Shown in pieces: positions 4,101 to 30,000 of a DNA stretch of 64,000 nt. Under the pieces are notes generated by a model. It saw nothing but the letters and a program-made list of their open reading frames with translations, was not told where the DNA came from and searched no databases. Source of the DNA: Klebsormidium nitens (taxonomy: Eukaryota > Plantae > Klebsormidiophyceae); assembly GCA_000708835.1 (NCBI GenBank), contig DF237000.1, positions 4,166 to 68,165 on the forward strand, read 5' to 3'. The position numbers were made by a program, and so were the translations under genes. The first letter of the stretch is position 1, and each line of letters starts with the position of its first letter.

Positions 4101-7100
4101 CCCCAGCAGCAGGTGCGAATTGCGGTAATTTGCATTTGGAGGTCGTGGGCTCTTGACACGTGTCAGACTCACTGTGGCACTTTGCCCGGCGGCATGACCC
4201 GGGTTGGCTTGGTGCCCTTGCTAGCTGTCGCCCCAGCAGCAGGTACGCATAGTTCGGCCACGTGCCGCGGGGTTGGTGGTTCTTTACTTCGTGTCAGAAC
4301 ACTATCGCGGTTTGCTCAGTCCGGTGCCCTCGCTGGATCGTGGCCCCAGCAGGTGCGCAGCTGTGATCATCTGCCGTAGGTTTGGTGGGCTCTTGACATG
4401 CGTCGGAAGCACTGTCGCTTTTTGCCTGGCGGCATGACCTGGGTTCATTCTTGTCGGAAGCACTACCGCTTTTAGCCTGGCGGCATCACCCGGGTTGAGT
4501 CGGTGCCCTCGCACAAATTATTGTTCAGCAGCAGGTGCGGGATGTGGCCAAGCTTTCTAGGTTTGCTGGCCTCTTGATACGTGTCAGAAGCACCGTAGCA
4601 GTTTGCCTCAGATGTGTCCACGTGAATCAGTTTGATGGGTGCCCGTAGGAAGGTTTGAGATCATTGAGCACCCGATCACGAAATCAGGGCAGCAGGAGCT
4701 TTGTGGTTGGCTCAATTCCATTGTAATGTAGCGCCCAGTCTTGCAGGTTTGTGCGACTCTAATAGATGGCCCTCCTTCAGAAACGCTTGGTTTCCAAAAA
4801 AACTCTTTTGTCCGAAATTTGCAATTTGAGTGTACGGTCTGAGAATGAGGCAGAAAGAAATTGGGGGACATCAATCTTCCGTATTGGCGCGGAGCAAAGG
4901 CCTCTTGCTTTTTTGCGAATTGCATTCCCTGTTTCTCTTTCGTTTTGAGCTGTAAGGGCTGAGCAGATTGATCAGACCCACGTGTTCTTTGCTTGACTGA
5001 AAAGCGGACGGGGCGCCTTCGTTGCGAAATAGGGCAATCCTTCGGGCAAGCGCGCGGGGGTTCCTGGAAGCAGGGTTTGTATCATCAGAGATTCATGTTG
5101 ACAACTTTGTACAACTAAGCTCAATCTCCTTGTTGCCAGGTAGGGGCCGGGGCGCCTTCGTTCCGAAGAAGGGCAATCCCCCGGGCAAGCGCGGGGGTGC
5201 GTGGAAGCAGATCTCCGGGGACCCACACGAGTGGCATCTGGTGCCCGGAACAGACTTCCGGGTTGACGGCTTCCGCTTCCAGAGCCCGCACTGCCGCTAC
5301 TGGTTCCTTTCTCACTTCCATGCCGATCGTAAGTTCGCGTTTCTTTCAACTTGCTTCCCTTTGAGCGATACCTGGGTTTTTATGGAAGTCGTGGTAAGAG
5401 AGTCGACTTCTAGCTCGGTGAAATGTCTTAAAAATACTCGCTGCCATGGCTGCTTCTCTTACCGTGTTTCCAACGGCTGCTTGCAAAGCTTAACAACAGT
5501 TCTTACCTTCAGCAGGGCGAAAACCGATACTCGTCTTGCATTTTGTAACCTGCCTGTAGCGCATTCCCGGAACCCTTCGCATTGAAAGACCAGGCATTGG
5601 ATAGGAAGGAGACATACGTTTCCCCTAAGCGATCTGAACGCGGGTAGCGTCGAAGCCAAAAGTTTGTCGACTCTAAGAGCTCGTCAAGCCTTGTGCCCTG
5701 CAAACTACTAGGGCCTGACCCGCAACTTCCGGCACGGCGTCATCTTCATCCGTGACGAAACTGTTGTCGACGCTGAACTCTTAGCCAGTCTGATTCTCCT
5801 ATTACGAGTATCACTTCCTGTTTAAGAAAGAACGAAAAGAAATAAAAGCACTGTCAAATTTTGCCCTGCTCACCAGGCTGCCAGGGCCTGACCCGCAACT
5901 TCGGGCACGGCGTCATCTTCCTTCATGACAAAATTGCTTCCGATGCTGAACTCTCAGTCATTCTGAATCCGATATTACGAAGACCACTATGTTTCATTAG
6001 AAGAAATGAATCTACATAGACATTCTGTGCCCCACAGACTACCAGGGCCTGACCCGCAACTTGCGGCACGGCGTTGACTTCACTCACTGGACGAAAGTGT
6101 TTCCGACGCTGAACTCTGCTCGAATCTGGCAATCGGATTTCCAGATTGCCAAAGCTGATTGTTTCAGTGCAAAAACGAGGGAAAAAAACAAAGAAAGCAT
6201 TCTGTGCCCCACAGACTGCCAGGGCCTGACCCGCAACTTCCGTCCCGGCGTCATCTTCATTTACCGAACGAAAGCGTTTTCGACGCTGAAGTCGCCTTCA
6301 ATCAGAACCCCAAATCACGGAATATGATAATTTCTGTTAGAACAAAAGAGCTCAAAAGAAAAGAAAAGAAAGAAGCATCCTGTGCCTCACAGACTACCAG
6401 GGCCTGACCCGCAACTTCCGGCACGGCGTCATTTTCTGCACGCCCATCACGGCGCGCCTGGTCCACATGAAGCTGGGCGTCCCGCTGGAGAAGCTCCGCC
6501 CGCTGCCGCTCAACGAGCGCACGCGCGTCGACAACTGCCACGTCACCCTCCTGGAGGCCAACCACTGCCCGGGGGCGGCCATGATGCTCTTCGAGCCCGA
6601 CGGCGCCAAGGTGACGTCAGCATAATTTCTTAGAGAAGGGGAGTTGCGTGGATTGGAGGTGTCATTGAGGGAGATTGTCTGTTCGAGCGAGAAAGCTTAC
6701 TTCGATGAGTGGAATTCACAGTCAGCTTCACGAACTTTAGAATCGTGATGGCATCCCCGTCACTCTGGCGGGATCCTCGCAATGCATGAGGAGTAAAGGC
6801 GTCTTGACGCAACACTTTGCATTGCGAACCTTCTTCGTCTTCCCAACCCGCTTTGCACAGCGTCAATGTATTACTCAGAAGAACCATACGAAATTCTAAA
6901 ACAAAAAGATCTTGCTCCGATTTCCTGCTGCCACAAGCCGACGTTCAGCCCAGCCATTTCTCCAATTTTTCTACGCATCCAAATCTCATAAGTAAGCACT
7001 TTAATTGAGAATTTCTGCTTCTTGATTCGCAGCCGACTCTTCACACCGGCGACTTCCGCTACTGTCCCGCCATGGCGCGCTACCCCGCGCTCCGAGCAGT

Positions 7101-9966
7101 GGAAATCGGCACCCTGATTCTGGACACCACGTACTGCGACCCCCAGTACGACTTCCCGGAGCAGGATGCCGTCATCCAGTTCGTCATCGATGCGATCCAA
7201 GCCGAGACGTTCAACCCCAAGACGCTCTTTCTGATCGGGGCTTACACCATCGGTGAGTCTCAGGGTCATTCAGTTCAGTTTTATAGTCATTCTGTCTCAA
7301 TTTTCATCATCAACTTTTCTAGACACCCAGTTTGTCGTTGGCGCATCTTGAGCAGAGACATTCAACCCCGAGACGCCCTTCCTGATCGGGGCCTAGACTT
7401 GATCGGTGAGTTTAGGGTCACCCACTTTGGTTTTGGGGTCAGTTTCAGTTTCTGGTGTCAAGGTTAAGTTACCCAGTTCGGCAGCGGCGCAGTACAGGCC
7501 GAGGTGTTCAATCCCCAGACGCTGTTCCTGGTTGGAGTCTACACGATTGGAAAGTGTGCCAGAGCGGTGATACAGGAGAAACGGAAACATCGTCAAGTGG
7601 GGCACCAAACCAGGCCCTTTGTTGGATCTTTTTTACCACGTTTCCAAAGCAGGCTCTCGCCGAAGGCGCTACGGAACGACACGTCTGCAACCAGGAACGA
7701 CACATCTGCACCCAGGCAACGAGTGCGTTTTTTCCGGGAGGTCGCTTGGGCGCTAAGAAGAAAGTGGGTAGCTATGACCGTTAACGGCCCGTTTGAATCT
7801 CCAGGCTCTCAGAACCGGAAACTTTGTTACGACTTGTCGCGCTCCAGATTAGGCTCCAGCTGAATGCGAGTTGGCGTCCGAGAACGGAGCAGCTAATTCT
7901 GCAGGCTCACTTCTTTGCCATTAAGCTCTCAAGGAAGACTCCCAACTAACGAACAGTTCGCATTCACGCATGGAGCGCGTGTGTTTGCAAAGTCGCGCGT
8001 GAGCTCAACACCAACTTCTTCGACAGTAAGCTCTCAAGGAAGCCTCCCTACTAACAAAAACCTTGCATCTAGGGAAAGAGCGCGTGTTTCTGGAAGTCGC
8101 GCGAGAGCTCAACACCAACTCCCCGACAGTACGCTCTCAAGGAAGGCTCTCGTCTAACGAAAAGTTTGCACTCAGGCAAGGAGCGCGTTTTTCTAAAAGT
8201 TGCTCGGGAGCTTAACACCAACTTCTTCAAAGTAAGCTCTCAAGGTAAGGCTCTCAACTAACGATAATTTTGTATTTAGGCAAGGAGCGCGTGTTTCTGG
8301 AGGTTGCTCGGGAGCTCAACACCAAGGTGTACGTCGGGGCTGCGCGGCGCAAGGTGCTCGCGTGCCTGGACCTGCCCGCCGAGGACATGGCGCGACTCAC
8401 CAGTGAGTGCCCACGTCATTTGTGACGTCACATAGACTGCGGTCAAACCCCGCCCCTTTTGCCCCTCTTTCCTCACGAATAGCTTCTGCGGCGTGGCGCA
8501 AGGTGCGTGTGCCTGGACCTGCCGGCCGAGGACATGGCGCGACTTACCAGTGAGTGCCCTTGTCATCTGTGGCGTCACTATTGTACTTCGGCCGACTCCA
8601 AATCCCTTTCTCCTAGTCGATTGGTGCTGCGCGGCGCAAGGCGCTAGCGTGCCTGAACCTGCTCGGTGAGGACATGGCACGACACACGAGTGAGTCCCGA
8701 CGTCACATGTGACGTCATCATAGACTGGGGTCAAACTCGCAGCTTTTCCCCCTTCTTTTTCATGAATAGCTTTTGCTGCGTGACGTAAGGTGCTCGCGTT
8801 TCCTGGACCCGGCCGCCGAGGGACCTGGCATGACACACGAGTGAGTGCCCACGTCAACCGTGACGTCACTATAAACCGTGGTCAAACCCGAGTACTTCCC
8901 CTTTCCCCAGTAGCCTGTGGAAGAGGAGTAGAGGGGTCGGACGGAAACTTCTGCATCAACGGTCTCTGGATCGGCATCGGCCCACGTTCTCTTGCATCGC
9001 TTGTCCGGAAAAGGTCGCCTCACTTGACAAAATGGGTGCAGGACTTCCGTTTTTGGCTCCATCGCCGCTTCCCTAGGATTGGCAGAACTGCGCCACTTTG
9101 CTTTTGGCTCACACGTGTTGCTCTGGTATGGGCGCAGCTAACGAGAATGAGAGCAACGTCCACGTGGTGCCCCTGTGGTCGCTGGCCAACTTCAAGCGGC
9201 TGACCACGATTGCTAAGCACTACCAGGGGCGGTACAACACCTTCGTCAGCTTCTCGCCGACCGGTGAGCGTTCCTTCAAAGGCCCGGGTTGATCCATTCA
9301 TACTGAAAGAAAGGTCGTATACCGGCAACAATGGTTTCTGAGGATGAAGCGTTTCGTTGTTAGAGGTTTGACGGTTCAGATTGTGTACCGAAATGTGGGT
9401 CAATGGTCGGCAAAAGCGGCGTTCTGCGTTTCTATGGTGCGTCCTGTTGTCTTGTCTGCACCATAAAACGGACGTACTCACATCCGCCGCCTGGATTGAG
9501 CAGCTTCACAGACGTTAATCTACGCGCCCAAGCTTGCACATCACTCCATTCCAGGGGAAGCTACTTCTCCCATCAGGATATGAGTGCACTGGATGTCTTT
9601 TGACGGTGTTTTCAGGCGGCAGCGGACATCATGAGTCAATCAAAGAGACGTCGTGGTCTTATAGACATCAGTTGTCATGAATGTCCGTCCAGATTTATTC
9701 CGTGAGGTTTGACAAAGCGCTCCCCCCGCGCAGGCTGGAGTTTCGGACGCGGCAAGAAGCGGACGACGGGCACGCGCCGGCAGCAGGGCACCATCGTCCG
9801 CTACGAGGTGCCGTACAGCGAGCACAGCAGCTTCAGCGAGCTGCGCGCTTTTGTGCGCGTGGTCAGGCCGGGCTACATTTTACCGCATGTGAATAACGAC
9901 GGGGGCCCAAAAGCCGAGGCGATGCTTCGGGAGCTGCTGAAAGAACGCGAGCCAGATGCCCAATAA
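1198..9966 (+). CDS. SNM1: SNM1/PSO2 (DCLRE1A-like) DNA interstrand cross-link repair metallo-beta-lactamase/beta-CASP nuclease with UBZ zinc finger and SAM domain
   Basis: Exons 1198-2484, 2942-3130, 3342-3458, 3917-4112, 5140-5328, 6393-6610, 7033-7252, 8280-8402, 9138-9263, 9734-9966, all GT-AG and phase-consistent. Motifs: VPGTDFRVDGF, LSHFHADHYQGL, EANHCPGA, LHTGDFR, LDTTYC, YTIGKERVF, PTGW, VPYSEHSSF. Also CPVC..H..CLD (UBZ) and WLDRLQLGRYAEAFVKEEVD...LGPKRKLL (SAM). The start codon and a possible extra exon in intron 1 are less certain. Confidence 0.93.
4093..4610 (+). repeat. Degenerate tandem array copying the SNM1 exon-4 end, donor site and intron start (~4 units)
   Basis: gccccagcagcaggt-like donor copies end at 4114, 4244, ~4354 and ~4536. 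The units also share ggctcttgaca(c/t)g(t/c)gtc, cggcggcatgacc and ggtgccct(c/t)gc. Confidence 0.8.
5690..6440 (+). repeat. Tandem array of 4 copies (~160-180 bp) of the SNM1 exon-6 acceptor and first ~45 coding nt
   Basis: agggcctgacccgcaact follows junction positions 5703, 5876, 6037, 6214 and the real acceptor at 6392. Confidence 0.92.
7923..8326 (+). repeat. Tandem array of ~104-bp units copying the SNM1 exon-8 acceptor and first ~47 coding nt
   Basis: Units start at 7923, 8028, 8131 and 8234 (aagctctcaagg..ctaac..gagcgcgt..gagct(c/t)aacaccaa). The last unit runs into the real exon. Confidence 0.92.
8337..8880 (+). repeat. Tandem array (~140-150 bp units) copying the SNM1 exon-8 3' end, donor site and intron start
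   Basis: The original and 3 copies of gcgcaagg..cctg(g/a)acc..gaggacatggc..gtgagt(g/c)cc..gtca..gacgtca. Confidence 0.88.
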
Positions 9967-10632
9967 GCGGGCGGCAAGACGCCCATTAATTGCGTTCGAG
10001 GAGAGACAGTGGGTGTGTACTGAAGCGGGGAATGGTTTCCAGCTTGCTTAAAGGTGCAGGAGGAGCAGGGCCCGAACTGATTTGAAGACTGTGTACAGTA
10101 CAACGAGCTCACGGCCGGTCAGCAGGAGAAAACGGTCACTGTGGAACGTACATCGTTGTATACCGTACAATAACACGGACCTGTGTCATGCATCATATCG
10201 CGTCAGCAGCCGCCATATGGGACGTCCATTCCGACATCTGGGGGTGCATACGGACGGTACAGCAGCGCACTTACGTACCGTCGATCTATTCGGCTAAGAT
10301 TTAAACGCATCATTGTAACTTCGAAACTGGCATATGCTGCATGGGTATTACACTTGCGGCATGTCAGTTAACTGTCTATGGTCGAGCGTGGCCACTGGCG
10401 GCCTCTAATTCAGCCATTGAAGCTCCGATGCATGCATGCAACTGGTGGACTGCTTTCCATCTAATTGTTGCTCTGACTGTCCTTTTGGGGTCGGCATAAA
10501 TGCGATTGCCAACACTCTTTGGTCACGCAATCCCAGGCTGTACAAGTAATAAAGTTGAATGTGCGAATGTTTACTCGACTCAGCCAATTTGCGCTACTCC
10601 TCAGCTCACAGTGGGCCGAACCAAGAATCTAA

Positions 10633-13600
10633 CTAAGTACTTACGAGTTCCTTGAACTTCCTCCGTAAAAGCCGCACAAACAGGGAGAAATCGTTCGTTT
10701 CGTTTACCATTGTTTGCAGCTCTTCGATACCAGAAACTTGCGGACTGCAATCTAGTACTGCACAAATGCAAACACGCATCGTTAGGATCCGTTCCGAAGT
10801 AGCAATTCCTGTCCGGGCCAGGTCAAAGTATTCATCAGCAAATGGTAATTCAACGACCGACAAGCTTGATTGTTGAGAAAATGAAGTACCATCGAAGCTC
10901 GGACCGTACGAAGTTGATCGTGCAGGTTGAAACCTTCGAAGCGAAGCTTTGCCTGGACGCGCGTCGTACAAAAACCTCCGAGATGAAAACCGCTCCAATC
11001 CCGTGATCCGTCAACTCTGCATACCCTCGTAAGTCTGGATAATTACGAGTGAAAACAAGCTGTAGCAGACATCAGCTTTGATTTTGACGGTGACATCAGG
11101 ACGGCCTTAACGTGACTTGCTTACATTGCAAATCTGCGGACTCCTCAACAGGAAGACTCTAAGTCGATGAAGCTTGTAAACCAAAAAAGCAAACAACATT
11201 ACAATCCGCACCTGAAGACCTCATCTTTTGGAGACGGTAAAGTATCCAGGCTTCTAGAATAAGAAGCGACGAAGAATTCTGCCTCACCCGTGTATGTTGA
11301 GGTGACGTGCAGCTGACACGAGAACTCCCGCTTCGTATCCCTTGGGTCAATCTGTGTGAAGACAAGCCTGAGAAGATCCCCTGCAGACGAAGAAAGAAGA
11401 AGGTGAAGGCGATTGATGGCGAGAAAAGGTCACCAAATCAGTACTGTTTGATCAGGGTGTTTTGAGCGCTGGACAACTAGCGAAGTTATATCTGCTGCGC
11501 CTGACTGGATCATACAGCAATCCAACCTGCGGAGTGCCAGCAGACTTCCGTCATTGACGATGATAAACCAAAAGCAAGAACGCAGTTACTCTACGAGGAT
11601 CGAGCAATTACCAGTATGTTCGAGGTTTCGGGCCGTGTTGAGACCACAGGACTTTCGGTCGAGAGATTGTCGAGAGTGTGAGAGGAGCCCAAGAAAAGTT
11701 GCAAACGGAGAGAAATGCTTTGCTCCATTGGTTTGTTTGAATGCCGCGGTTCAAGGTCTTCACTTGGAGACGGTCGCTTCATCGACGTTCACGTTGCAGA
11801 TGCTTTCCTCGGCGCATTGTTTCCTTCCAAACAAACGGTTCGCATGGCAGCAACTCCGCTCATAGGTGCCCACTGCCGCTTGGGATAAGAGCTGGCCGCT
11901 ACTCAGCAAGGAGCGGCGTCGACGGGGACTCAACCTCGTCCAGATACTTTTTTTTCCGGGTTTGAAACAATTTCAGAGTTTTCGAGGCTTAGGTCATAAC
12001 TCAAGACCCTGAAACTCACTCGGCGTGTGCTCGAAGCGCAGTCCCAAGTGCTTCCGATACAGTTCGTCCCCTAAGAGCAGCGCCTCGGCCTTTGACTCCT
12101 TCACGGCCCCTTCGTCCTCCAGCTCTGCACCGGAGAAGCCCGTTCTCGTTTTTTTGTTTCTGAAACAGTCTACAGAATCCTAATTCACATGTCTAGCAAG
12201 AATCCTCGGGAAAGCAGGAGAGATTGAGACTGAAGAGGCATTCTTGAATTGTGGTAGGGCTAGTGGCGACCAGGTTTGCCACTAGGTGACTCCCGCTCAA
12301 CTCTTACGGTTTCCTTCATCCTTTGGCTCTGCGCCAAGGAGGAGGGACTTCGTTTGTTTCCGGGCACCTGAGTGGAAAGCTTGTATTTGATAATGTGGAC
12401 ACTTTCTGGAAATCATATGCTGCCTAACAACGTGATCCCAGTTTTGACTTCCGTCTTCGGTACTATTTCTTGGAATGATTCCATGCCTTGTCTGGTTCCT
12501 TGAAGTATTCAGAAGAGCTCACCGATGATCTCCTTGTCAATCTCCTGCTTTTCCTTGCTGACAGTGTCCTCCAAATCTGCCAGCCGGGGCGGAAGGCTCG
12601 CCTCCTCCTCCCGGATATCCGCCAACTCCTTCTGGTAGTGCTCCAGGCTCACGCGCTGCTCCTCCAACACTGCAGAACGAGAAATGAGGACTTGGACCCT
12701 GGAGACTTCAAATTTACAGGGATTGCACAGAAAGCCCCAGTGTGCTTGCAAGGCTAACAGTCCCACAGATCAGCGGCCCAAGATGCTTGCAAGGCTAACA
12801 GTCCCACAGATCAGCGGCCCAATGTTCCGAGCCACAAACTTATCGTGACTTGCACACCCAGGAGTGAAAACGATCAAACAATCAGCCAGCCTTGTCAGAG
12901 GGGCTAACATTAGTTGGGAATGTTGACAAGCTGTATGGGTAACCCAAGACTATGGAACGACATGGGGCAAACGTAAGTCTGCTGGAAACAGGGCGAAAGC
13001 AGAGCGTGTTGTCCAGAAAGTACAGCAGCTTTCTTAAGCAGCACAAACAGGCGTGCCGCAGGGCAGGACCCCTCTAGATATATTGAGGTCAGGCTTGCTG
13101 CTTTGCATTATAGTGGTCTACTCTTGCCTTTACGTTTGGACTGCCCCATTGAATCTGACTTTGAGCCCCTGGCGAGTGGCGAGGCCTGAAAGATCCACTG
13201 GCAACTGGCTTCGGTCACAAGCACTCACATTTCTGCAGCGCCGCCGCCGTCTCATTCAGCTTCTCCTCCTCTTCGCTCAAGTCCTGGACCCTTCCTGCAA
13301 AGGAGAAAGTGATATCAACCACTCCAACATGGCCGTGACCTTTCCACCTCTGCACAACCATGAAGAAGCGCAAAAACGCCTGTTGTTTTATCCCTTGCAC
13401 ATAGTGACCCAGTCGCTCAGTGAATTTTGGATGGCCAAATGCTCCTTCATCTGGATAGAAGACGCAACCGCGCTCTCAGATAAAATTCTCAGATTCATCT
13501 GAATTCAGACGTCACAGTAGCACACAGCTCCAGCAGTGACATATGCACGGTTCCTGGTGGTAAAGTTCTTCATTAGGCGGGATATGAAACTTAAAGGCGC

Positions 13601-18200: not shown

Positions 18201-21200
18201 CTACCGTAGTTCGCATGCTCCGCTAAATAAGTCGCCCCTATGCTTGGATAAGACACCTTTCCCACTTTCATCTCTTATCTCAAGCTTAATCGCAGGTCAT
18301 CAATTTCTGCAGGGCCAGGGATTTGAGGCAGGAAAACGACCTCCTGAAGATCAAGTTCATTGAGCAAGAGGAGAAACGTGAGTTGCGTCTCTGGTCTGCT
18401 CCTCTTGTGTTTCGTCTGGCGGCTGAGAGATTCAAATTGAAGGCTGAGCTGGGCTCAAACGAGTGCTCGATCTTGAAATGCATTTTAAAGATCTGCCAAG
18501 AGGGTTAGGAATGGTTGAGCTTCACAAGCCACAGACATGAGACCGTCACCAAATCTTTTACCAACCACTTTGCGCAGCCAACGAGCTGTTATTTGCGAAG
18601 ACGATGTCTCTTCGTATCCTCACTTTTTAAAATCCTCGGTTGCAAATCACCGCCCTATTCTTAGGTCTCCTCATTGAACACTGGTCCCCAGAGAAGGTCT
18701 CCCATCAACCGAAGCTTCCACGAACCATCTAACTTAGAGCATCTAACTAGTTGTTCTTTGCGGACTTGAATTTATCCAGATCTTCACACTTCCAGATCCT
18801 CAGTCGGATTCTTTCGCCCTTTTCTCGGATCTGCTGATCGAAGCCAGGTCCCCATGGAAGGTCCGGTTTCAACCGAAGCTTCCAATAACCACGTAGAGAC
18901 TCTAAAGACCTGTTCGTCGCAAGTTCGGTATTCCTCAAGAGTCCTCACCGCTCCTCGTTGAATCTTCCGCCCTTGTCCCAGATCTGCTGATTCAAGCCAC
19001 GTTCCCATGGAAGGTCCAGCTCCGATTGAAGTTTACATTAATCACTTAGAAACTCACGAGCTCGGCAAAAAAAAAAAACTGTATTCCGAGATGCATTGTC
19101 TCGTCCTCTCTCAGATCTGCTGATCGAGGCCCGTCTCCAAGAGCTCCAATCAGAGCTGCAGGATGCCACGCAGCACGCTCTTGAGTACGCGCGACCAGGC
19201 CCAGAGAACCGTGCAGCGGAGATTCAAACGCCGGCAGAGGACGTCGGAGCGAAGGGGGCTGCTGCGACAGACGTCCAGGTACGTTGCACCAGAAAAGATA
19301 CGGACTGCCAATGATTCTGAGACTCGCAATGGTTGACTTTTTTTGTGATCGTAAAGTTCTGTTTTGCTCGACTTGGTCTGGCACTAAGCTGGACATCGAA
19401 TCTGAGATGTTAGATTCACAAGCGAAACTCAAGAGCAAGGATTACGAAGGGCTCAAAGGGAGGGGAGTAATAAGAACTGTGAGGGTTTACTCTATGGCGC
19501 CCTTTCAGAACGGCTCGGTCCTACATCTGTGCTGCGCTTAGTGACGGGTTGCCAGCTTGACTCGATGCCGAAAGCAACCACGCTTTCTCCGAGCCATGCT
19601 CAACGCGTTGACTCCGGACCCTGCCGTGCTACAGTCTGATCGGCATCGATCCCTCAAACTACTGGCGCTACTCGTTCGTTTACGTATTAGTATCCTGTCG
19701 GCAAGTCCGGTCAACAATCAACAGACAGTCGCTCAGGGCGCCTTTGATTCCCTTGTGTTCTCGTCGTCTGGGAAGGCCCCTAACCGTAGCACATGCCGTT
19801 TCTGAATCGACACTTGATTCTCATGTCCTCTTTCTTCCACACACTGTGTCACCTTGTCGCGTCGTGTTTGGCACGTGTGTTTGATGCACTGCTTTCAGAA
19901 GCAACTTGATTAACAAGTCTTTCATTATTGCTGATAGTCGAAACACTGGCAATCTCAGCAACCAACTGCACCAGACAGACCCGAAAACCTCAACGACTCC
20001 TTTTGCAGGTCCAAGCCCCGACAGAGCCAGCCAAGCCGGACCATCTTCCTGTGGCATCATCAGCGGCCACTCGCGAGCTGCCACGTGGCTTCGTTGAGGT
20101 CCGCAAAGAGGACCTCTTCCCGGGCCAGAGCGCCGCCGCTCAAAGCTCTGAGCTCCCGGCACTTGATCGGGAGCAGTTGAAGCGCGAGGGTTTCGAGGAG
20201 GGTTTGAAGCAGGGGTTAAAGAAGGGTTTGGAGGAGGGACAGAAGCAGGGTTTCGCGGAGGGGTTGAAGGAGGGGTTGAAGAAAGGTCTGGAGGAGGGTC
20301 AGAAGCAGGGTTTCGAGGATGGGGTGAAGGAGGGTGTGAGGACGGGCTTGGAGGAGGGCTTGAAGCAGGGTGACGGGAAGGGTTTCGAGCAAGGTTTGGA
20401 GGAGGGACAGAAGCAAGCCATGCAGAAGAGCTTCGAGGAGGGGTGGGCGAAGGGCATGAAGGAGGGTTTGGAGAAAGGTTTGGAGGAGGGTTTGGAGAAG
20501 GGTTTGACGGAGGGTTTGGCGAAGGGCCCGAAGCAGGGTTTGGACAAGGAGTCGGAGAACGGTCTGGAGGACGATTTGGAGGTTGCAAACAAGGATCTGA
20601 AGGAGGGCGAGGGTGAGGGTTTCGAAGACGGTTTCGAGAAGGGTTTGGAGGAAGGCTTAGAGAAGGGGTTGGAGGAAGGGTTAGAGGAGGGTTTGGAGGA
20701 CGCTGACCCGACGGCGGGCCTTGGTGGGGATCCCGACGCGGACAGCGCCTGGCGCGAGCTGCTGCAGATCCTAACTGGGTGCTGCGCAGACGAGTGCGGG
20801 GAGAACAGGATCCGCTTCACGCACGAGCGATCAGGTGACTCCTCGGTCTCCTGTATTGCTTCAAAGGCCTTGTAATGAATCGGTCTCGGGAAGACTTTCG
20901 TCCTCAGAAAAAGGCGAGTCAGGAGTGCGGGGTTCGATTCACCTTCGCAAGAAGAGAATAAAATCGTACGGCCTCATCGACATCAATCTTTGACCATCCA
21001 TGATGCTTTCGCTTCTCTTTCAAGTTACAGGCGACCCGTGAAAAAGCGCTCACGGGCATGAGTAGGTCGATCACAATCGCCTTCATGGACTTGCCTCGTC
21101 ATAATTTCAAACTCCGAGACGCAACAGAAAATTCCCCAACATCGCCTCTGAACCCCTTTTAAATCCCCGTCGGTTCCGGTCGCTTTTTGTCCTTCTCTTC

Positions 21201-21656: not shown

Positions 21657-23217
21657 GCGTGTTCGAAAAGTGGAACTTAGAAAGTATACCCTCGTATTGA
21701 TGATTAGGATATTGTCGTGTTTGTTCTACGTCTGTTTGGTACAAAACGTATGCTCCCAGGGAGCCGCTGGCGAGCCCTGATCGGAATCCGCATTAGGACG
21801 TGAATGTTTCAGATTAAGTTAGCATCGGTCATCAAGTATTGGGCCACGAGGGAGACATATGGAGTCGGCGCCGTTGTCAGCTGTTTGGAGCATACTCTTG
21901 GGATGTGTTGGCCCCCCAGATATCTTGGTTTCTATTTTCAAGCAATCCTGCCAATGACAAGCAAGGGACAACTAAGTATGCAGCGACAAGCCATGCAGGT
22001 CTGATGATTTTGTCCTAGAGGGCTGCGATTCCACTTTCTTCCTTTCCCCGTCCAGATGTCTTTGAAAACGTGCAAACGTGTACATACTGGTCGCTTCATG
22101 GATTGCAACCGATGGGCGGTGGCATCCAGGCGTCTTCAAACTCATTGATGGTTCGACAACAGGCACCTGCCAGTGACTTCTTCGATTCATGTGCCTGAGT
22201 CCGGGCGCGACTGATACATGGCCAAATATTGAGTGAACCTAAGGCATGTTCCGGTCCATATGCAAATAGACTCACCAAAAGCGACCGCGTCTAGTGAATC
22301 CGTCACTAGCTGGCATGCATGCCATGACGCAAAGCCTTGAAGTGGGCAGGCCGAATCCGATCCATTCGTTTAGCTTGGCATTATCGATCATGCATACGAA
22401 CAGTGCCGCCACATATGATGCCAGCTCGCAAGTTGAAAATTGCATTGAACCCGTTCATCAAATCTATTATTTCAGTCGATGTAGGACGCATACATAGCAG
22501 CTTGCTGTGTCGGCGGCGGCGTGTTGCTTACGCACCGTGCAGCTGTCAAAGCTACAATTAGTAGGCTAGCCGTCGATCTTTCTTCGACTGCATGCATCGA
22601 TCATCACACGCTGCACTACGGCCGCGGCATGCCAGCGACCGTGCCAGACGGTGAGGTAGTAGCGGCCGCACGCACCAAAGTAGCTTACCTACAACTTAAC
22701 CCTGTCACCTTTTCCATATCATCAGTGCGCGCATTCAACGTCGGTGGGGAGACTAACGACCTAGGGCGTTAATCTCCCCAACTCAATGAAAACGAAGTAA
22801 TGGTTTCTTGTCTTAAAGCACACGTTCCAACTTTGCTCGACCGTTACGTCGGCCGGGCGTCCCAACTTGACTCCTCTAAATTACCAGGAAGTACAATTCG
22901 ACGCACAGAAGACCAGCTAGCTTGTCTTTCGACAGCTTTAAGGCACGACTAGTAGGAATACGCAAGTTCAGCGCCGCCGTCTAGCTTGAACCTTTCGTTC
23001 CGCGGCGTCCTTGCTCCTTGTCAAAGGGCAAACTATACAGCAACAGAGACCGATTCAAGCACTTTGAAGTAAGACCTAACGTACATCGAGCAAATTCTAT
23101 GTTAAAATGCCGACCCCACTCAACACTTCTGTACTTAAAACATGTGCGTTATAGCAGTTCATACTAGTGATATTAGACTACTCATTACATCTGACCCTAG
23201 ACCCCTCTCAAACGCTC

Positions 23218-26200
23218 CTACTTCATTCGACCGTAAGAGTACTGCCTCGAGACACCCAGCTCCACGGATTTATCGGCCTCTTCCACCTGTAGATCTTTCT
23301 GCGAAACTCCTGATTCGCCAGCCTCAAGTTGCGCCAGTGACTCAAGCCCTTCGAAACGTTTCTTGACCAGAGTCCAAAAGTGCGTCACCCCTTCATCCGA
23401 CTCAAACGCCTCCTTCAGAAGCAGGCCCACGTTGACCAAAATCCCGGCGAGAGAAATGGTGATAGACGACATAAACGTGACGTCGTCCACGTAAATCCTG
23501 GTCGCGCGGGAGCTGCCCAGAATGTAAAGCGCCGACTGGAAGACGGACTGGGGCAGCGTCTCGACGGCGATCTGCAATAAGCCGCGCGCCTCCTGGTAAT
23601 AGCGTATGCTCAGAGGCGCGCCCCGCACAGTGAGATGGCCCCCCAGGCGTCCGACCAGCGCCAGCAGATCGAACGCCACCGTTGCGATCACGCCAAACGG
23701 CCATAAGAGGACCGCATAAGCGAAGCGGCCGATGCCCAACGAATCGGCTCTGTCACGTGCCTGGACACTTGCCGGCTCGGGGGGCCATTTGAAGGCGAAA
23801 CCGAGCCCCCCGCTACAGCGAGGACCGCGAGTCCAAGCGATCGAGATCAACAGCCCGGAAATTAAAAAGGGCCCGACAATACAAGGAAGAAGGACCCACA
23901 TAGGCCAAGCACCCCAGACGTCGATCAACACCAGGATATTGAGACCGATGTGAACGGGCATAAAGAACGAAGTGGGAATGGCCGCCAGATCCTTGGAATA
24001 CGTTGCCATCGAAGCCCGGCAACCGGCCCTCTCTTTTGGGGGATTCGGGGTTTGGTTATCTGCCCCGCATGACCTCCATAGGGTTAAGCCGATGACCAAT
24101 ATGAGGAAGAGCATGCCAAACGTCGCCCACGTAACGGCCACCACAAGCTTCGCGTTGGCGTTACGGCACAGGTTGCGCTGCCGCACGTTCGTATACCCCA
24201 CGCCCACGTATGCGGCGCTCTCCGGGCCGAAGTCGAGCTTGTCCAAGAAGTCGGTGTCGTTAAGGTAAACCGGCGCGCCGTTAACCAGGAAATAGTCGCG
24301 ACCCTCGATCTCGAAAACGTTCAAAACCGACTGGAGGGCCGGCAATGCAGTGGAGCGCCTCTCCCGGTTCGAGGGGGTGCTTCTGCCCACTGGGATGTAC
24401 TCGGGGGACTCCCCGGATACGAAGACGGCAATCTTCCCGAGGCAAACCTCCTTCCGAGTCGCCCGGGTTAGCTTTGACCCGGTTCCTGTGAGGTCGAGAA
24501 CGCAGCCGTTGTCCGAAGAGCACGCGGGCCAGAAGCGGATCTGGGAAAGGGCCCCTCCCTCCAGGCGCAAGTACTGGCATCCGGGGGGAACCTTAGAGAG
24601 GTCCGGTTTTTCTGGCTGGCTCGGGTTGTAGCTGAGCCGGGCGTAAGCCAGGTCGGTTAGCGCCCCCAGTTCGCTCGGCAAGAAGCCCTCCAGGCTGTTG
24701 TTGCTCAAGGTCAGGTACTTGAGCTTTTTCAAGCCGGAGAGCTGTGGAGGGACCGGCCCGGTTAGGTGGTTGTTCCCCAAACTAAGCCGGGTTAAGGAAG
24801 TCAGGTTTCCGAGTTTGGGGGGGATGCCACCTGTTAGTCCGTTGTCTTGCAGGAGCAGAACGGAGAGGTTGGGCGAATCGGCGAGGGCGGGGGGGATCGG
24901 ACCGGAGAGGCGGTTCTCGGCGAGGGCTAGGAGGGTTAGGTTAACCAGGCCGCCGAAACCCGCGGGTATGGGCCCCTCCAGGTGGTTGCCTCGGAGCGAC
25001 AGAGTGGTGAGCTTTCCTTGGGAGGCCAGCGTTGGGGGGATCCCCCCCGAAAAGGCGTTATCGTCCAGCGCCAAGAAACGGAGTTCGGGGAGGTTTCCCA
25101 GGCACTCTGGGATCGAGCCGTTGAGGAAGTTGCTCGCGAAGGCCACGGATTGCAGCGCAACCGCCCCGCAAAGCGCGTTCGGCAAGGGGCCGGACAGCTG
25201 GTTCCCCTGAAGAAACAGGTACTGTAGTTGTGCGAGGCCTCCAAGCCCGGGGGGAATCTGGCCCGACAACCGGTTGCCCAAAAGCAACAGCCCTTGGAGG
25301 CTGGTCATGTTCGCAAGCGCCCCGGGAAGAGGCCCCGAGAGCTGGTTGTAACTCGAAAACCAGAAGACGAGGTTTCGCAAGTTGCCCAGTTCCACCGGAA
25401 GTGGGCCCGAGAGCTGGTTCTCCGATAGTTCCAACCACCCGAGGTTGGATAATCCTCCGAGGGCGCGGGGAATGGGGCCCGTCAGATTGTTGGCGTTCAG
25501 TACGAGGAACACCAGAGCCGAAAGGTCGCCCAACTCCTCCGGAATCGGGCCCGTCAGAAAATTGGCCGCGAGCGCGAGGGAGGTGAGGGAGGCGAGGCTG
25601 CCGAGCTCTCGGGGGATCCCTCCGGTCAGAAGGTTATAGCTCAGGTTGATGGCCCTGAGCTTCGGTAAGCGGCCCAGCCCGGGAGGGATCCCCCCGGTCA
25701 GCTCGTTCTCCTGGAGATACAGAAGGACTAGGTCGGGGAAGTTCTCAGGGGGGGGGATGGACCCGGTCAGGCGATTCGTCCCCAGCTCCAAATCCAAGAG
25801 GCGGCTGGGGGATCCCCCAAGGTCCGCCGGTATGGGGCCGCTCAAGTTGTTGTGGGGCGCGACCAGAAAACGCAGGCTGGTCAGCCGGTTGAAGCCCGCC
25901 GGGATCTGCCCGGAGAGGCTGTTGTTCCCGAGAAACAGCCACTGGAGGGTTTTCAGGTTGGACAGCTCCGGGGGGATCCCCCCGGCCAGGTTGTTGCTGC
26001 TCAGGTCCAGCCGTTCGAGCGCCGGAAGGCCGCCCAGAGCGCCCGGGATGGTTCCGCTGAGCGCGTTGGATGAGAGGTTCAGCCGTTGGAGCTGCAACGC
26101 GCCGCCGATCGACACCGGGATGGGACCGTCCAGAAGGTTGCCCGCAAGCGACAGGATGCCAACACGTGGCAGGGCGGCCACGCCAGGAGGGATCCCGCCG

Positions 26201-27045
26201 GTCAGGAGGTTGCTGCTGAGATCGAGGCCGACGAGGCTGGTCAGGTTTCCGAGCCCGGGGGGAATAGGCCCCGCGAACCGGTTGTTCGCGAGCGACAGGC
26301 CTTGGAGCAGCGAGAGCCGGCCTAGTTCCGCCGGAATCGGGCCGGAAAGCTTGTTCCGCTGCAGGAAGAGGCCGGTCAGCCTCGACAGTCGGCCGATCTC
26401 CGCGGGCAAAGCGCCGGTTAACAAATTGCCGGCGAGGTAAAGGAACCGGAGGTTAGGGAGACTTGCGAGTTGGCGGATGACCGGGCCCGAAAGTAGGTTC
26501 TCCCGCAGGTTAAGGTAAACCAATTTGCGCAGGTTATCCAAACCGAGCGGTATGCCCCCCGTCAAAAGGTTGTCCGACATGTCGAGCCCTTCGAGGCTCG
26601 ACCACGCCCCAATGCTGGCGGGGATCTCCCCCTCAATCAGGTTAAGGGAGAGGTTACAGTAAACCAGGTTTCGGAGGCTGCCCAGGTCAGGGAGGGGCAA
26701 GGTGCCGGCCCTGCTTTCGTTTGTGACCGGGTTTTCAAACCCGGTTAGCAGATTGTCGGCCAGAATGAGGGATGTGAGGTTGACCAGATTCCCAAGCGCC
26801 CGGGGAATCTCTCCGGTCAGGTTATTGCCCGACAAGTCGATCCCGGTGAGGAAAGTAAAGTCGCCCAGCTCCGGGGGGATCCCCCCGGTTAACCCCATGT
26901 CAAAGAGGTTAAGCTCTGGCGCGCCCAGGGTTAGGTTAGGCGTCAGCCGGTTGATCTCGTCGATGGTAAGCGCCTGAGCCCGGCCCGCCAGATGAAGGAG
27001 AGCCACCGCGAAACTGAGAGCGTAGAGCAGCTGGGTCGAAGCCAT
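23218..27045 (-). CDS. Intronless LRR cell-surface protein: signal peptide, ~31 plant-specific LRRs, ~160-aa juxtamembrane ectodomain, ~6 hydrophobic helices, no kinase domain
   Basis: Single 1275-aa ORF starting at ATG with a hydrophobic signal peptide (LLYALSFAVALLHLAGRAQA). It has about 31 LxxLxLxxNxLsGxIP 24-aa repeats and several hydrophobic segments in 24147-23430. Confidence 0.9.
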   Translation of the reverse strand: MASTQLLYALSFAVALLHLAGRAQALTIDEINRLTPNLTLGAPELNLFDMGLTGGIPPELGDFTFLTGIDLSGNNLTGEIPRALGNLVNLTSLILADNLLTGFENPVTNESRAGTLPLPDLGSLRNLVYCNLSLNLIEGEIPASIGAWSSLEGLDMSDNLLTGGIPLGLDNLRKLVYLNLRENLLSGPVIRQLASLPNLRFLYLAGNLLTGALPAEIGRLSRLTGLFLQRNKLSGPIPAELGRLSLLQGLSLANNRFAGPIPPGLGNLTSLVGLDLSSNLLTGGIPPGVAALPRVGILSLAGNLLDGPIPVSIGGALQLQRLNLSSNALSGTIPGALGGLPALERLDLSSNNLAGGIPPELSNLKTLQWLFLGNNSLSGQIPAGFNRLTSLRFLVAPHNNLSGPIPADLGGSPSRLLDLELGTNRLTGSIPPPENFPDLVLLYLQENELTGGIPPGLGRLPKLRAINLSYNLLTGGIPRELGSLASLTSLALAANFLTGPIPEELGDLSALVFLVLNANNLTGPIPRALGGLSNLGWLELSENQLSGPLPVELGNLRNLVFWFSSYNQLSGPLPGALANMTSLQGLLLLGNRLSGQIPPGLGGLAQLQYLFLQGNQLSGPLPNALCGAVALQSVAFASNFLNGSIPECLGNLPELRFLALDDNAFSGGIPPTLASQGKLTTLSLRGNHLEGPIPAGFGGLVNLTLLALAENRLSGPIPPALADSPNLSVLLLQDNGLTGGIPPKLGNLTSLTRLSLGNNHLTGPVPPQLSGLKKLKYLTLSNNSLEGFLPSELGALTDLAYARLSYNPSQPEKPDLSKVPPGCQYLRLEGGALSQIRFWPACSSDNGCVLDLTGTGSKLTRATRKEVCLGKIAVFVSGESPEYIPVGRSTPSNRERRSTALPALQSVLNVFEIEGRDYFLVNGAPVYLNDTDFLDKLDFGPESAAYVGVGYTNVRQRNLCRNANAKLVVAVTWATFGMLFLILVIGLTLWRSCGADNQTPNPPKERAGCRASMATYSKDLAAIPTSFFMPVHIGLNILVLIDVWGAWPMWVLLPCIVGPFLISGLLISIAWTRGPRCSGGLGFAFKWPPEPASVQARDRADSLGIGRFAYAVLLWPFGVIATVAFDLLALVGRLGGHLTVRGAPLSIRYYQEARGLLQIAVETLPQSVFQSALYILGSSRATRIYVDDVTFMSSITISLAGILVNVGLLLKEAFESDEGVTHFWTLVKKRFEGLESLAQLEAGESGVSQKDLQVEEADKSVELGVSRQYSYGRMK

Positions 27046-30000
27046 GCTGATCGGTGCTCAGTCGCCTGGAAAAAGAAGACGCAAGGTGACCGTCAGCCAC
27101 TCGAGCGATGAGTTGGATTTTGAGATGCGGACGTTGCAAAGGTAAGAAGTGCAGTAGATATCGTTCCCTTCTCTCCGGTCCCTTTGTGAAGGATATAAAG
27201 ATTGAAGATCTGGTCGGTAAAAGCTCTCGAAAGGGATTCCGAGGAAAGGGAGTACAAGACCTTTGGTGGGAGCCGCTTCGAAAGTTAGCTACTCTGCCCC
27301 AGGAAAAACTTCAGGATCGGACTATCGCCATTGGTTGTGCAACCAGGGCGAGCTGTCGAGACGACAACTCGCATCGTCAAAGATAGACCTCTGCAGACTT
27401 CGAGAGACCCAATTCCGATTACGACCTAAATCCTGAAAATGCACTCAAGTAATGTACAATAAAGCAGTCAAGAAGATGTACAAAGTCGAATATTCCGACT
27501 TGTTAGCAGATGCGAGCACCTAGGAAGCTTCCAATCGTCTGACGAAGGCCGAGGAATGACGAAAGGAAGGAATCCTAAATTAAAGTCAGTGTCAACTTCG
27601 TTTGACGTGATGGTTTCAAAGGTCGTCTTTGAGTGGCAGGACGATGGTTGTCGAAGCGTGCAGCGTCGCACCATTGATAAGCAGATACAAAGAGAATCAG
27701 AAGAAAGCAGAGCCAATTGCTCAAAAACGGAAGAGAGGGGCTCTGAAAAGAGAACGCAGCGCCAAAAAGTCCAGGGCCTCTCTTAGATCTGATCAGAGCC
27801 GGGTTTTCGAACTGCCAACTCGTTTTGCATGGCCTTACATCTTTCTTTCATCAAGTGACAAGAATGCAAGGAAGTTTCTTGACGTAACCCTGAACAATTT
27901 GTGTCTCTGACAGCAAACAACCAACAAATCCGCCCACATACGTTGGAGTCTCGAAGTTCAGTATGCGGCGGCGCTCAACCTAAGAACAATGTGCCAAGAC
28001 TTTTCTTTCTAGGACTAGCGTCAAGAAGATAACCGGATAACACGGTCCAAACCGGGAGCAATTCTGAGCAAAGCCTTTTAGACCCGAGTTTCCTTCCAAA
28101 CCAAGCCTCTAGAAATAGTCGAGGACACAATCTTAACATTATCCTGTCTTGCCTTAGCGTCCCACTTTTCAATTTGACTGCAGAAAATGCAACTCTGAAT
28201 TGCAAAAAGCTCAAGAGGCAAAACCAATAGATGACAGGATGGAATTGGAGATGTCCTTTGACCAACCATCATGGTAGAGCATGTGGCAAAAGCGTATGAC
28301 AAGAACAGCCAAGTAGCATGACTAACAGAACATACCTGTTTTTGATATATATCAGCACTAAGCTCGCTCCATAGAAATGTGTTCCCTGCCTTTGCAATAT
28401 TGCCCGTCAAACAGAGGCTGGTATAGACACTGGGCTTCACCAATTTAAGATTGTTGCAGAGTACCTGCAAAGACAAAGTCATAAAAATGGTCTTAGCCCC
28501 ATGTATTGATTATCTGGTTGCTGGTGTCTGTTTGAGTCAAAAGACGCCTGTCTTGAAAGCTCAGGCTCAGGTGGACCTTTTCACACCAACCTTTGAAAGG
28601 ACTGACGTTCGCCTCCCAAAGCAGAAGGCAGTTAGAGCCTCTGGATACGCTGCACGCTAATGAGCAGAGCAGCACCAGGTTTGGATGTGCTCAATTCAGA
28701 AACATCAGTCCCAGTAAAGCATAACAACAACGCCCTTACAGTTTTGATGGCTTATCAGAACAACGGTTTGCCGCATGCAATGTACGCTTGTATGGTTATA
28801 TGAGCTTGTTTTAAATGCATCAGTTGCATTACATCTCTCCGACTCAAAACAAACCTCAGGCCTTACATTCCAGCAGTTTGACATCAGCATCTTACAATCG
28901 TGACTGGAGCTAGAGTCTAATAGGACGGATTCACCAAAGCTGGCAAGCTAGCTATACGAACCAGCTGGGGATTACCTCCACTCGCTCACCTTGTGTAGCA
29001 CACAGGGTATGCACGCCGCCTCCAGAAAACCATCGTCATGAAGGCTGTCGCTGCATTGGGTGCTGTTTCTTCCCTGAGTGTATGATCTCAGCCGCCCTAG
29101 CTAGATGAAAATCCTGAATATTTGCACATTGAAGCACAACCTAGAGATTGCAGTGAAGCAATCAGTTCTGCCTCTCAATCGACTCTACACTAGGACAATG
29201 CCTAGGCCAATGCAATGAGTGGCTGGGGTTGAATAGCTGCTGCTCCTCACCGCCGCCCCTGCTTAAAAACAGTCCCATCATTGACAGTCCCATCCTGACA
29301 TGCGGCAAACCACCCTACTGCATGGTATTACCTATCATGACATCAGTACTACCTTCCTGCCATGTACCTTAAATAGTATGTCCGGCAAGCCGCTAGAGTA
29401 CATATGTAGGTATGCAGCATTGAAGATTGAAGAGCCGAAGTACGGACAGGGGGAGTTCTCTGCAAATATGACAACATGGATCGTGACGGGGCGCCCGGGG
29501 GAGTTCTCAGAAGTCAGGCGGCGGCTGCCGGCCGCGACGTCGGCGCTGACGCGGCCGCGCCTCCAGCAGCGCCGCGGCGCGGATAGCGGCCGCGGCGTGT
29601 TACCAGGCTTTTATCCTTTCATAGTTTATGAATTTAGGCTGCGCGGCATGGCCACCGTGACGCATGATGCATGAAGCACGCCGTGTAAACGTCGCTTGAA
29701 GCCATGGCGGCTGAGCCGCCCCGACCCCGCCCAACACGTCAATATTATCGATCGCATCATGTAGTTACATATACCATCCAACAACGGTCCACACAACTAT
29801 TGACTTCGTCAATGAGGCTCATGTGATCGACGTCTGATCAGCTCCATGGAACCCTTTTCACCAGGCTTGAGTGTGCTATGGTATAGACGTAGGACATGCG
29901 ACTGGATGATGCTACGTCGTCTATCTCAGAAACGGGCGCGGGCTGAGTTTTCGGAAATAGTAAGATATTTTTGTTCCCTTTTGAAAATAAGCAGGTTATA

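Follow-up and report, generated by a model that had tools for sequence, protein, structure and literature searches.

A transcribed kinase-less LRR receptor gene of Klebsormidium nitens whose predicted membrane end resembles a single repeat of the XK family

What does an LRR receptor of a streptophyte alga carry at its membrane end when no kinase follows the transmembrane helix? This question is raised by a gene in a 64-kb stretch of Klebsormidium nitens DNA (contig DF237000.1), referred to below as the window. A sequence-only reading had proposed that an XK/Xkr-scramblase-like multi-pass domain replaces the cytoplasmic module. The XK-related (Xkr) family, Pfam PF09815, includes XK/XKR1, XKR4, XKR8, XKR9 and CED-8. 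On the basis of transcript, profile and structural analyses we consider it probable that the gene codes for a kinase-less LRR receptor ending in one repeat of XK type that corresponds to the Xkr ND, and that its family has expanded in Klebsormidium.

Gene structure and transcription

The receptor is encoded on the minus strand by one ORF of 1275 aa (23218..27045, stop codon included in the CDS span), which contains no internal stop and is by far the longest ORF within the window; the segment 23218-24147 originally singled out is the 3' end of this ORF. Transcript evidence was obtained as contigs from four small public runs belonging to four studies and defines the following parts:

22803..27065, minus strand: last mRNA exon, with 20 nt of 5'UTR ahead of the CDS and about 415 nt of 3'UTR behind it (transcript contigs)
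23218..27045, minus strand: complete CDS, 1275 aa, one exon (ORF list and transcript contigs without gaps or joints)
27066..28335, minus strand: 5'UTR intron, GT..AG, junction ambiguous by the 3 nt CAG (loose ends of contigs and boundary letters)
28336..28368, minus strand: 3' end of the upstream non-coding exon (contig letters; the contig of run X1 runs on for about 390 nt)

The contigs of the receptor gene are confined to 22803-27068, the X1 contig spanning this entire range and the X4 contig 22823-27068, and show no joints, gaps or differences inside it. Contig depth is zero on both flanks, for example at 22000-22787, and the 3' end of the mRNA at 22803 denotes the furthest reach of a contig. 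Past 27068 all four runs share identical letters, which were placed 1.27 kb upstream at 28339-28368. These shared letters, together with the GT-AG boundaries on the minus strand (donor CAG/GTATGT, acceptor TTCCAG/GCGAC), identify the contigs as spliced RNA. The receptor gene is transcribed and its CDS is unspliced. Splicing to a downstream kinase exon, which the sequence-only reading had itself raised as a counter-possibility, was not seen: in the four runs the contigs stop near 22803, about 415 nt past the stop codon, without a joint, and hence the mRNA includes no kinase exon. The 1.27-kb GT-AG intron in the 5'UTR is the only one of the gene, the 3.8-kb CDS being intronless; one relative (locus L003, see below) is spread over several ORFs.

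Ectodomain and absence of a kinase

The N-terminal three quarters of the protein are organized as follows:

26971..27045, minus strand: signal peptide, approximately residues 1-25, with a hydrophobic core at 1-19 and the end AQA/LT (hydropathy and direct reading)
24646..26931, minus strand: about 30 plant-type LRRs of 24 residues each, residues ~39-800 (Pfam and LRR phase)
24160..24645, minus strand: Cys-containing extracellular juxtamembrane module, residues ~801-962 (Pfam scan and relatives)

A Pfam/NCBIfam scan of the 1275-aa protein returned LRR families only, at about residues 40-800. The 24-residue phase extends from residue 63 to about 796 and gives approximately 30 repeats, close to the 31 counted before, and 17 of the 19 NxS/T sites of the protein lie within the LRR region. 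The juxtamembrane module has no Pfam match and carries conserved cysteines in the motif series FWxxC..GC...VCLGKI...GVGY..NLC. It is also found in K. nitens GAQ81742.1 (P0037), in the JGI protein P0034 and in the L001 and L003 copies, and is, as judged from sequence comparison, family-specific. The last 327 residues gave no Pfam/NCBIfam match, PF09815 included, when the window protein itself was scanned.

The absence of a kinase is borne out by two kinds of evidence. No kinase domain was matched by Pfam in the 1275-aa protein, and the motifs HRDxKxxN and GxGxxG are missing from all frames of the window, which contains only two isolated and distant DFG[VS] strings. The receptor thus shares with plant LRR-RLPs and LRR-RLKs such as FLS2 the signal peptide, the 24-residue LRRs, the N-glycosylation sites and one TM helix after the juxtamembrane region, but differs from both in the family-specific juxtamembrane module and in the conserved multi-pass domain that follows the TM helix. 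Compared to LRR-RLKs it lacks the cytoplasmic protein kinase domain, and in contrast to LRR-RLPs, which end in one TM helix and a short cytoplasmic tail, it continues with four more TM helices and an inserted helix.

Fold of the membrane module

An AF2 model of residues 955-1245 was calculated from an alignment of 44 sequences (A5) and reached a pLDDT of 87.1 and a pTM of 0.83; an earlier model from a 6-sequence alignment was set aside as unusable (pLDDT 45). The assigned elements are:

24076..24150, minus strand: receptor transmembrane helix TM0, residues 966-990 (hydropathy and AF2; model helix 11-43)
23377..24009, minus strand: XK-ND-like domain, residues 1013-1223, which align with hXKR8 7-195 (AF2, structural comparison and Pfam profile)
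23920..24027, minus strand: helix 1, residues 1007-1042, carrying H1032..N1036, where the family consensus is D-x-x-T-D (AF2 and alignment)
23827..23907, minus strand: helix 2, residues 1047-1073, opening with a conserved WPMW (AF2 and alignment)
23647..23733, minus strand: kinked pair of helices at residues 1105-1133, with a short beta strand on either side (AF2 and alignment)
23518..23604, minus strand: helix 3, residues 1148-1176, the ETLPQSVFQ helix (AF2 and alignment)
23401..23484, minus strand: helix 4, residues 1188-1215, FMSSITISLAGILVNVGLLLKE (hydropathy and AF2)
23221..23382, minus strand: cytoplasmic tail with an amphipathic helix at 1222-1236, followed by an acidic tail of low confidence (AF2)

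Kyte-Doolittle hydropathy and the AF2 model concur in four long helices, a kinked pair and a C-terminal amphipathic helix after TM0, in agreement with the earlier count of about five further hydrophobic segments. ETLPQSVFQ, located at 23536-23562 as reported, corresponds to residues 1162-1170 of helix 3, which carries R1154, Q1158, E1162, P1165, Q1166, Q1170 and Y1174. In the kinked pair P1116 is conserved in 41 and D1126 in 37 of the 44 aligned sequences.

Xkr proteins consist of two related repeats, termed ND and CD, and each repeat combines four TM helices with a helix that enters the membrane only in part (PMC8298096, PMC12334663); the inserted helix of the ND has been described as IH1 (PMC8298096). 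The helix order of the AF2 model is that of the ND, namely TM1-TM2, IH1, TM3-TM4, and the kinked pair 1105-1133 is a candidate counterpart of the partly inserted IH1. Since the LRRs lie outside and TM0 crosses the membrane once, the ND-like domain is expected to start on the cytosolic side, which fits the topology of Xkr proteins. The predicted strands beside the candidate inserted helix represent a loose parallel only.

As an Xkr protein comprises two repeats of four TM helices and an inserted helix each, the algal domain corresponds to one of them. Its length of about 210 aa compares with 337 positions of the PF09815 model, and past helix 4 only 60 residues are left according to hydropathy and AF2. 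The domain therefore corresponds to one XK repeat, that of the ND, and not to a whole XK domain. It shares with the Xkr ND the four TM helices, a candidate helix partly inserted from the cytosolic side, the expected cytosolic start and, judged by motif spacing, conserved polar or charged residues on helices 1 and 3. It differs from Xkr proteins in the lack of a CD and hence of cavities between ND and CD, of an IH3 and of a caspase-cleaved C-terminal plug, and in the extra N-terminal TM helix that ties the ND-like domain to the big LRR ectodomain. With only half of the XK fold present, a monomer cannot form the C1 and C2 cavities that lie between ND and CD.

Relationship to the XK family

The resemblance to the XK family was assessed by profile and structural comparisons. 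When domain-only segments were scanned against Pfam, PF09815 was the top family, matched by 3 of 44 segments with a best E of 1.6e-4; it was the sole Pfam family below E 0.01, all others having a best E of 0.025 or worse. Two of the three matches were located in the profile and both fall within its first half: P0045 aligns collinearly to positions 3-174 of 337 (21.2 bits, E 1.6e-4), and K. nitens GAQ93027.1 (P0031) to positions 4-190 (17.3 bits). The Pfam gathering score of 24.8 bits was reached by no family member, 21.2 bits being the best value. With the AF2 model as query, an exhaustive VIA-align run over 48,161 PDB representatives placed all three representatives of the XK family on ranks 1-3, each aligned via its ND:

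Rank 1: rXKR9, 7p16_A, score 9.4, 152 aa, 3.6 A, residues 4-189
Rank 2: hXKR4, 9boj_B, score 8.2, 145 aa, 3.5 A, residues 106-364
Rank 3: hXKR8, 8xej_X, score 7.2, 148 aa, 3.9 A, residues 14-275

Other searches gave no comparable signal. HMMER with the C-terminal piece, the alignments A2, A4 and A6 or the P0045 domain found no Xkr chain in the PDB at E ≤ 10, and a word-index search with alignment A5 retrieved family members only and no canonical XK protein at E ≤ 10. Foldseek against the PDB with the AF2 model returned nothing significant; XKR8 appeared at rank 24 with a TM-score of 0.33, the best in the list. A feature search in the ESM-Atlas (score 0.82) included a cluster with PF09815 in 40% of its members, to be taken as a lead only, and the corresponding shape search yielded nothing but irrelevant rows of low TM-score.

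These mixed results have to be weighed against an alternative origin of the module as a lineage-specific algal domain without XK ancestry, in which four-helix packing and a P-Q motif arising by chance imitate the XK repeat. Such an origin would account for the lack of a match at the Pfam threshold, of an Xkr chain among the HMMER results in the PDB and of a significant Foldseek match. It is, however, at odds with the three XK representatives on the top ranks among 48,161 structures and their common alignment via the ND, with PF09815 alone falling below E 0.01 in matches collinear over the same N-terminal half, and with conserved polar residues on the very helices where Xkr proteins keep theirs, and we regard it as unlikely. 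The XK-like nature of the membrane module is largely supported by three independent routes, sequence and motifs among them. The original assignment thus holds for the type of domain, with PF09815 as the best though sub-threshold family, the motifs and the VIA-align ranks 1-3 on its side, but has to be narrowed to the first repeat; of the profile and structure comparisons made here, the collinear sub-threshold Pfam alignment and VIA-align agree with it, whereas HMMER against the PDB found no Xkr chain and Foldseek nothing significant.

A family of receptors in Klebsormidium

Relatives were sought at the level of both the protein and the domain. A word-index search with the C-terminal piece gave five relatives of 33-75% identity, and the same search with the full-length protein, scored on residues 960-1275, gave no match. 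A domain profile run against 1.84 billion representatives retrieved 85 homologues at E ≤ 1e-3, 25 of them at E ≤ 1e-30. The exact window protein is absent from the searched collection. Six K. nitens accessions belong to the family (GAQ78274.1, GAQ78110.1, GAQ93027.1, GAQ81742.1, GAQ84842.1 and GAQ78170.1), as does a transcript of K. subtile. In a Pfam scan of 56 homologues LRR_8 was present in 29 and LRR_1 in 28; many of the LRR-less entries are exon-sized fragments. Paralogues combining LRRs with several TM helices, for which a search had been suggested, exist; K. nitens holds at least six divergent paralogues of the domain family, and the LRR/ND-like family appears to be expanded in Klebsormidium.

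Each homologue contains one copy of the domain, 'two-stretch' matches being a single domain split in two; within the 64-kb window no second copy was found. In L001, a JGI metagenome contig, an ORF for LRRs, juxtamembrane module and TM helix (6011-7804) is followed about 200 nt later by an ORF for the multi-pass domain (8001-8699), and in L003 the LRR, juxtamembrane, TM and multi-pass parts are dispersed across several ORFs. The order LRRs, Cys-containing juxtamembrane module, TM helix and ND-like domain is, on this comparative evidence, a conserved family layout.

The family sequences are already public and annotated as hypothetical, 'L domain-like' or 'FLS2'. Two of them, GAQ78274.1 and GAQ78170.1 (P0016, P0030), bear the public name 'LRR receptor-like serine/threonine-protein kinase FLS2' yet end in an ND-like domain, and the Pfam matches at E ≤ 0.01 for alignment A3, which includes both, contain no kinase family. 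Their names seem to have been transferred on the strength of the LRR part and are misleading.

Conserved residues and the acidic cluster

Characteristic buried charged residues are found on TM1 and TM3 of the Xkr ND (PMC8500837, PMC8298096, PMC12334663). In Xkr8 the exchange of D26, D30, K134, E137 or E141 for alanine markedly lowers scrambling, R183A reduces both PS exposure and NBD-SM uptake, and Q145 is likewise named (PMC8500837); D125, D129 and E313 of Xkr4 are the equivalents of D26, D30 and E141 (PMC12334663). The algal family shows the consensus D-x-x-T-D on helix 1 and R-x3-E-x3-[ERNQ]-x-x-P-Q-x3-Q-x3-Y-x-x-G on helix 3, which agrees with the placement of D26, D30, K/R134, E137 and E141 in the Xkr ND, the residue equivalences being based on motif spacing and not on residue-level superposition. 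The key positions are occupied as follows:

Position 1032: D in 18/37 of the family; H in the window protein
Position 1036: D in 28/37 of the family; N in the window protein
Position 1154: R in 35/44 of the family; R in the window protein
Position 1158: E in 25/44 of the family; Q in the window protein
Position 1162: E in 15/44 and R in 12 of the family; E in the window protein
Position 1165: P in 39/44 of the family; P in the window protein
Position 1166: Q in 36/44 of the family; Q in the window protein
Position 1177: G in 44/44 of the family; G in the window protein

Of the E-x-x-P-Q signature emphasized at the outset, P and Q are widely conserved, but E is retained in a minority. Most family members keep D-x-x-T-D and P-Q. 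The acidic cluster equivalent by spacing to D26, D30, E137 and E141 corresponds to positions 1032, 1036, 1158 and 1162, three of which are non-acidic in the window protein (H, N, Q and E, respectively); in its closest relatives, as in the protein itself, position 1032 is H or S, 1036 is N and 1158 is Q, and E1162 is retained. Sequences with N or Q at 1036 have a residue other than Glu at 1158 in roughly three to four lineages, which are few independent events; this pairing suggests that both positions might form one site.

With the buried acidic cluster mostly neutralised (H1032, N1036 and Q1158, with E1162 kept), the window paralogue is less likely to be an Xkr8-like scramblase than a divergent or regulatory member. 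A scramblase activity of the window protein is hypothetical, and the absence of most of the cluster and of the CD argues against calling this copy a scramblase. The fold alone does not predict activity either, since neither Xkr8 nor Xkr9 showed scrambling in vitro once purified (PMC8298096, PMC12334663).

Possible modes of action

Beyond the architecture, transcription, family conservation and similarity of fold and profile to the XK ND described above, we infer a first scenario for the receptor. The LRR ectodomain would bind an extracellular ligand, and the signal would be relayed via the TM helix to the ND-like domain, which might either act in the membrane itself, by local lipid perturbation or scrambling of the sort proposed for the Xkr4 ND vestibule, or offer a cytosolic loop to a partner. 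Work on Xkr4 has ascribed membrane thinning to the vestibule of the ND. That the family as a whole comprises ligand-controlled, lipid-perturbing receptors, in which the LRR sensor drives an 'ancestral half' of the XK domain alone or in dimerised form, is an extension that we consider doubtful.

A more specific scenario is that of a ligand-gated scramblase, in which LRR-driven homo- or heterodimerisation joins two half-XK domains into an eight-helix XK-like unit. The two related repeats of the XK fold are arranged round a two-fold axis (PMC8298096, PMC12334663) and share their membrane orientation, so that the geometry could permit single repeats to dimerise in parallel; moreover, every family member contains one repeat only, and most retain the acidic cluster. 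On the other hand, the window copy carries H, N and Q at the equivalents of D26, D30 and E137, and the failure of purified Xkr8 and Xkr9 to scramble applies here as well; dimerisation into a scramblase appears improbable. A predicted homodimer of two copies of residues 955-1245 scored 0.20 versus a mark of 0.32, a value which bears neither for nor against binding. Finally, a GPCR-like or channel-like signalling domain, in favour of which stands the weak Foldseek list consisting mostly of GPCRs, is rejected as highly improbable on account of poor superpositions (TM 0.12-0.22, rmsd 16-26 A, probability ≤0.12) and of four TM helices and a half-inserted helix instead of seven TM helices.

The kinase-less receptor with a single XK-type repeat can be compared to other systems that link LRR domains physically to a multi-pass membrane effector, namely LRRC8/VRAC and Slo1-LRRC26. 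In LRRC8, however, the LRRs lie in the cytosol and follow a pannexin-like pore on its C-terminal side, and LRRC26 is a separate subunit. Within open-access text we found no paper that connects XK-related domains with LRR receptors, with Klebsormidium or with plants, nor one on LRRs plus XK in algae, in line with the initial impression that an equivalent had not been described in plants. What is new here is the use of a single-repeat XK-like domain to form the membrane end of a receptor with LRRs, not the component sequences as such.

The XK/Xkr structures used for comparison are all of animal origin and consist of two repeats; a single-repeat XK-like family in a streptophyte alga would widen the range of the XK fold and provide a candidate for its pre-duplication unit. 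The fusion to plant-type LRRs suggests a receptor output other than phosphorylation by a kinase in a lineage near the origin of the land-plant receptor kinases. If the lipid-perturbing reading were true, the family would represent a kinase-free route from receptor to membrane lipid in the streptophyte lineage and a living example of the pre-duplication XK form. Family members that differ naturally in whether they have the buried acidic cluster allow direct tests of the ND alone on membranes.

Neighbouring sequences

Downstream of the receptor gene two ORFs adjoin it on opposite strands. The first (19928-20875, plus strand) is a putative ORF of 315 aa consisting mostly of E/G/K/L-rich repeats (EGLKKGLEEGQKQGF...), and the second (19821-20588, minus strand), lying opposite to it, is proline-rich. 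At about 61500-62450 the window has a low GC content of 0.41 and overlapping minus-strand ORFs with GFSVGFSV-type repeats; a stretch of undetermined residues in the translation points to Ns or a gap in the assembly. In the metagenome contig L001 the family member is adjoined by a 742-aa ORF (9779-12007, minus strand) with many tandem 'SGLAAIATSGNASNLSGVLATSNLPTIPTSQL' repeats, and an HNH_3 gene is located nearby.
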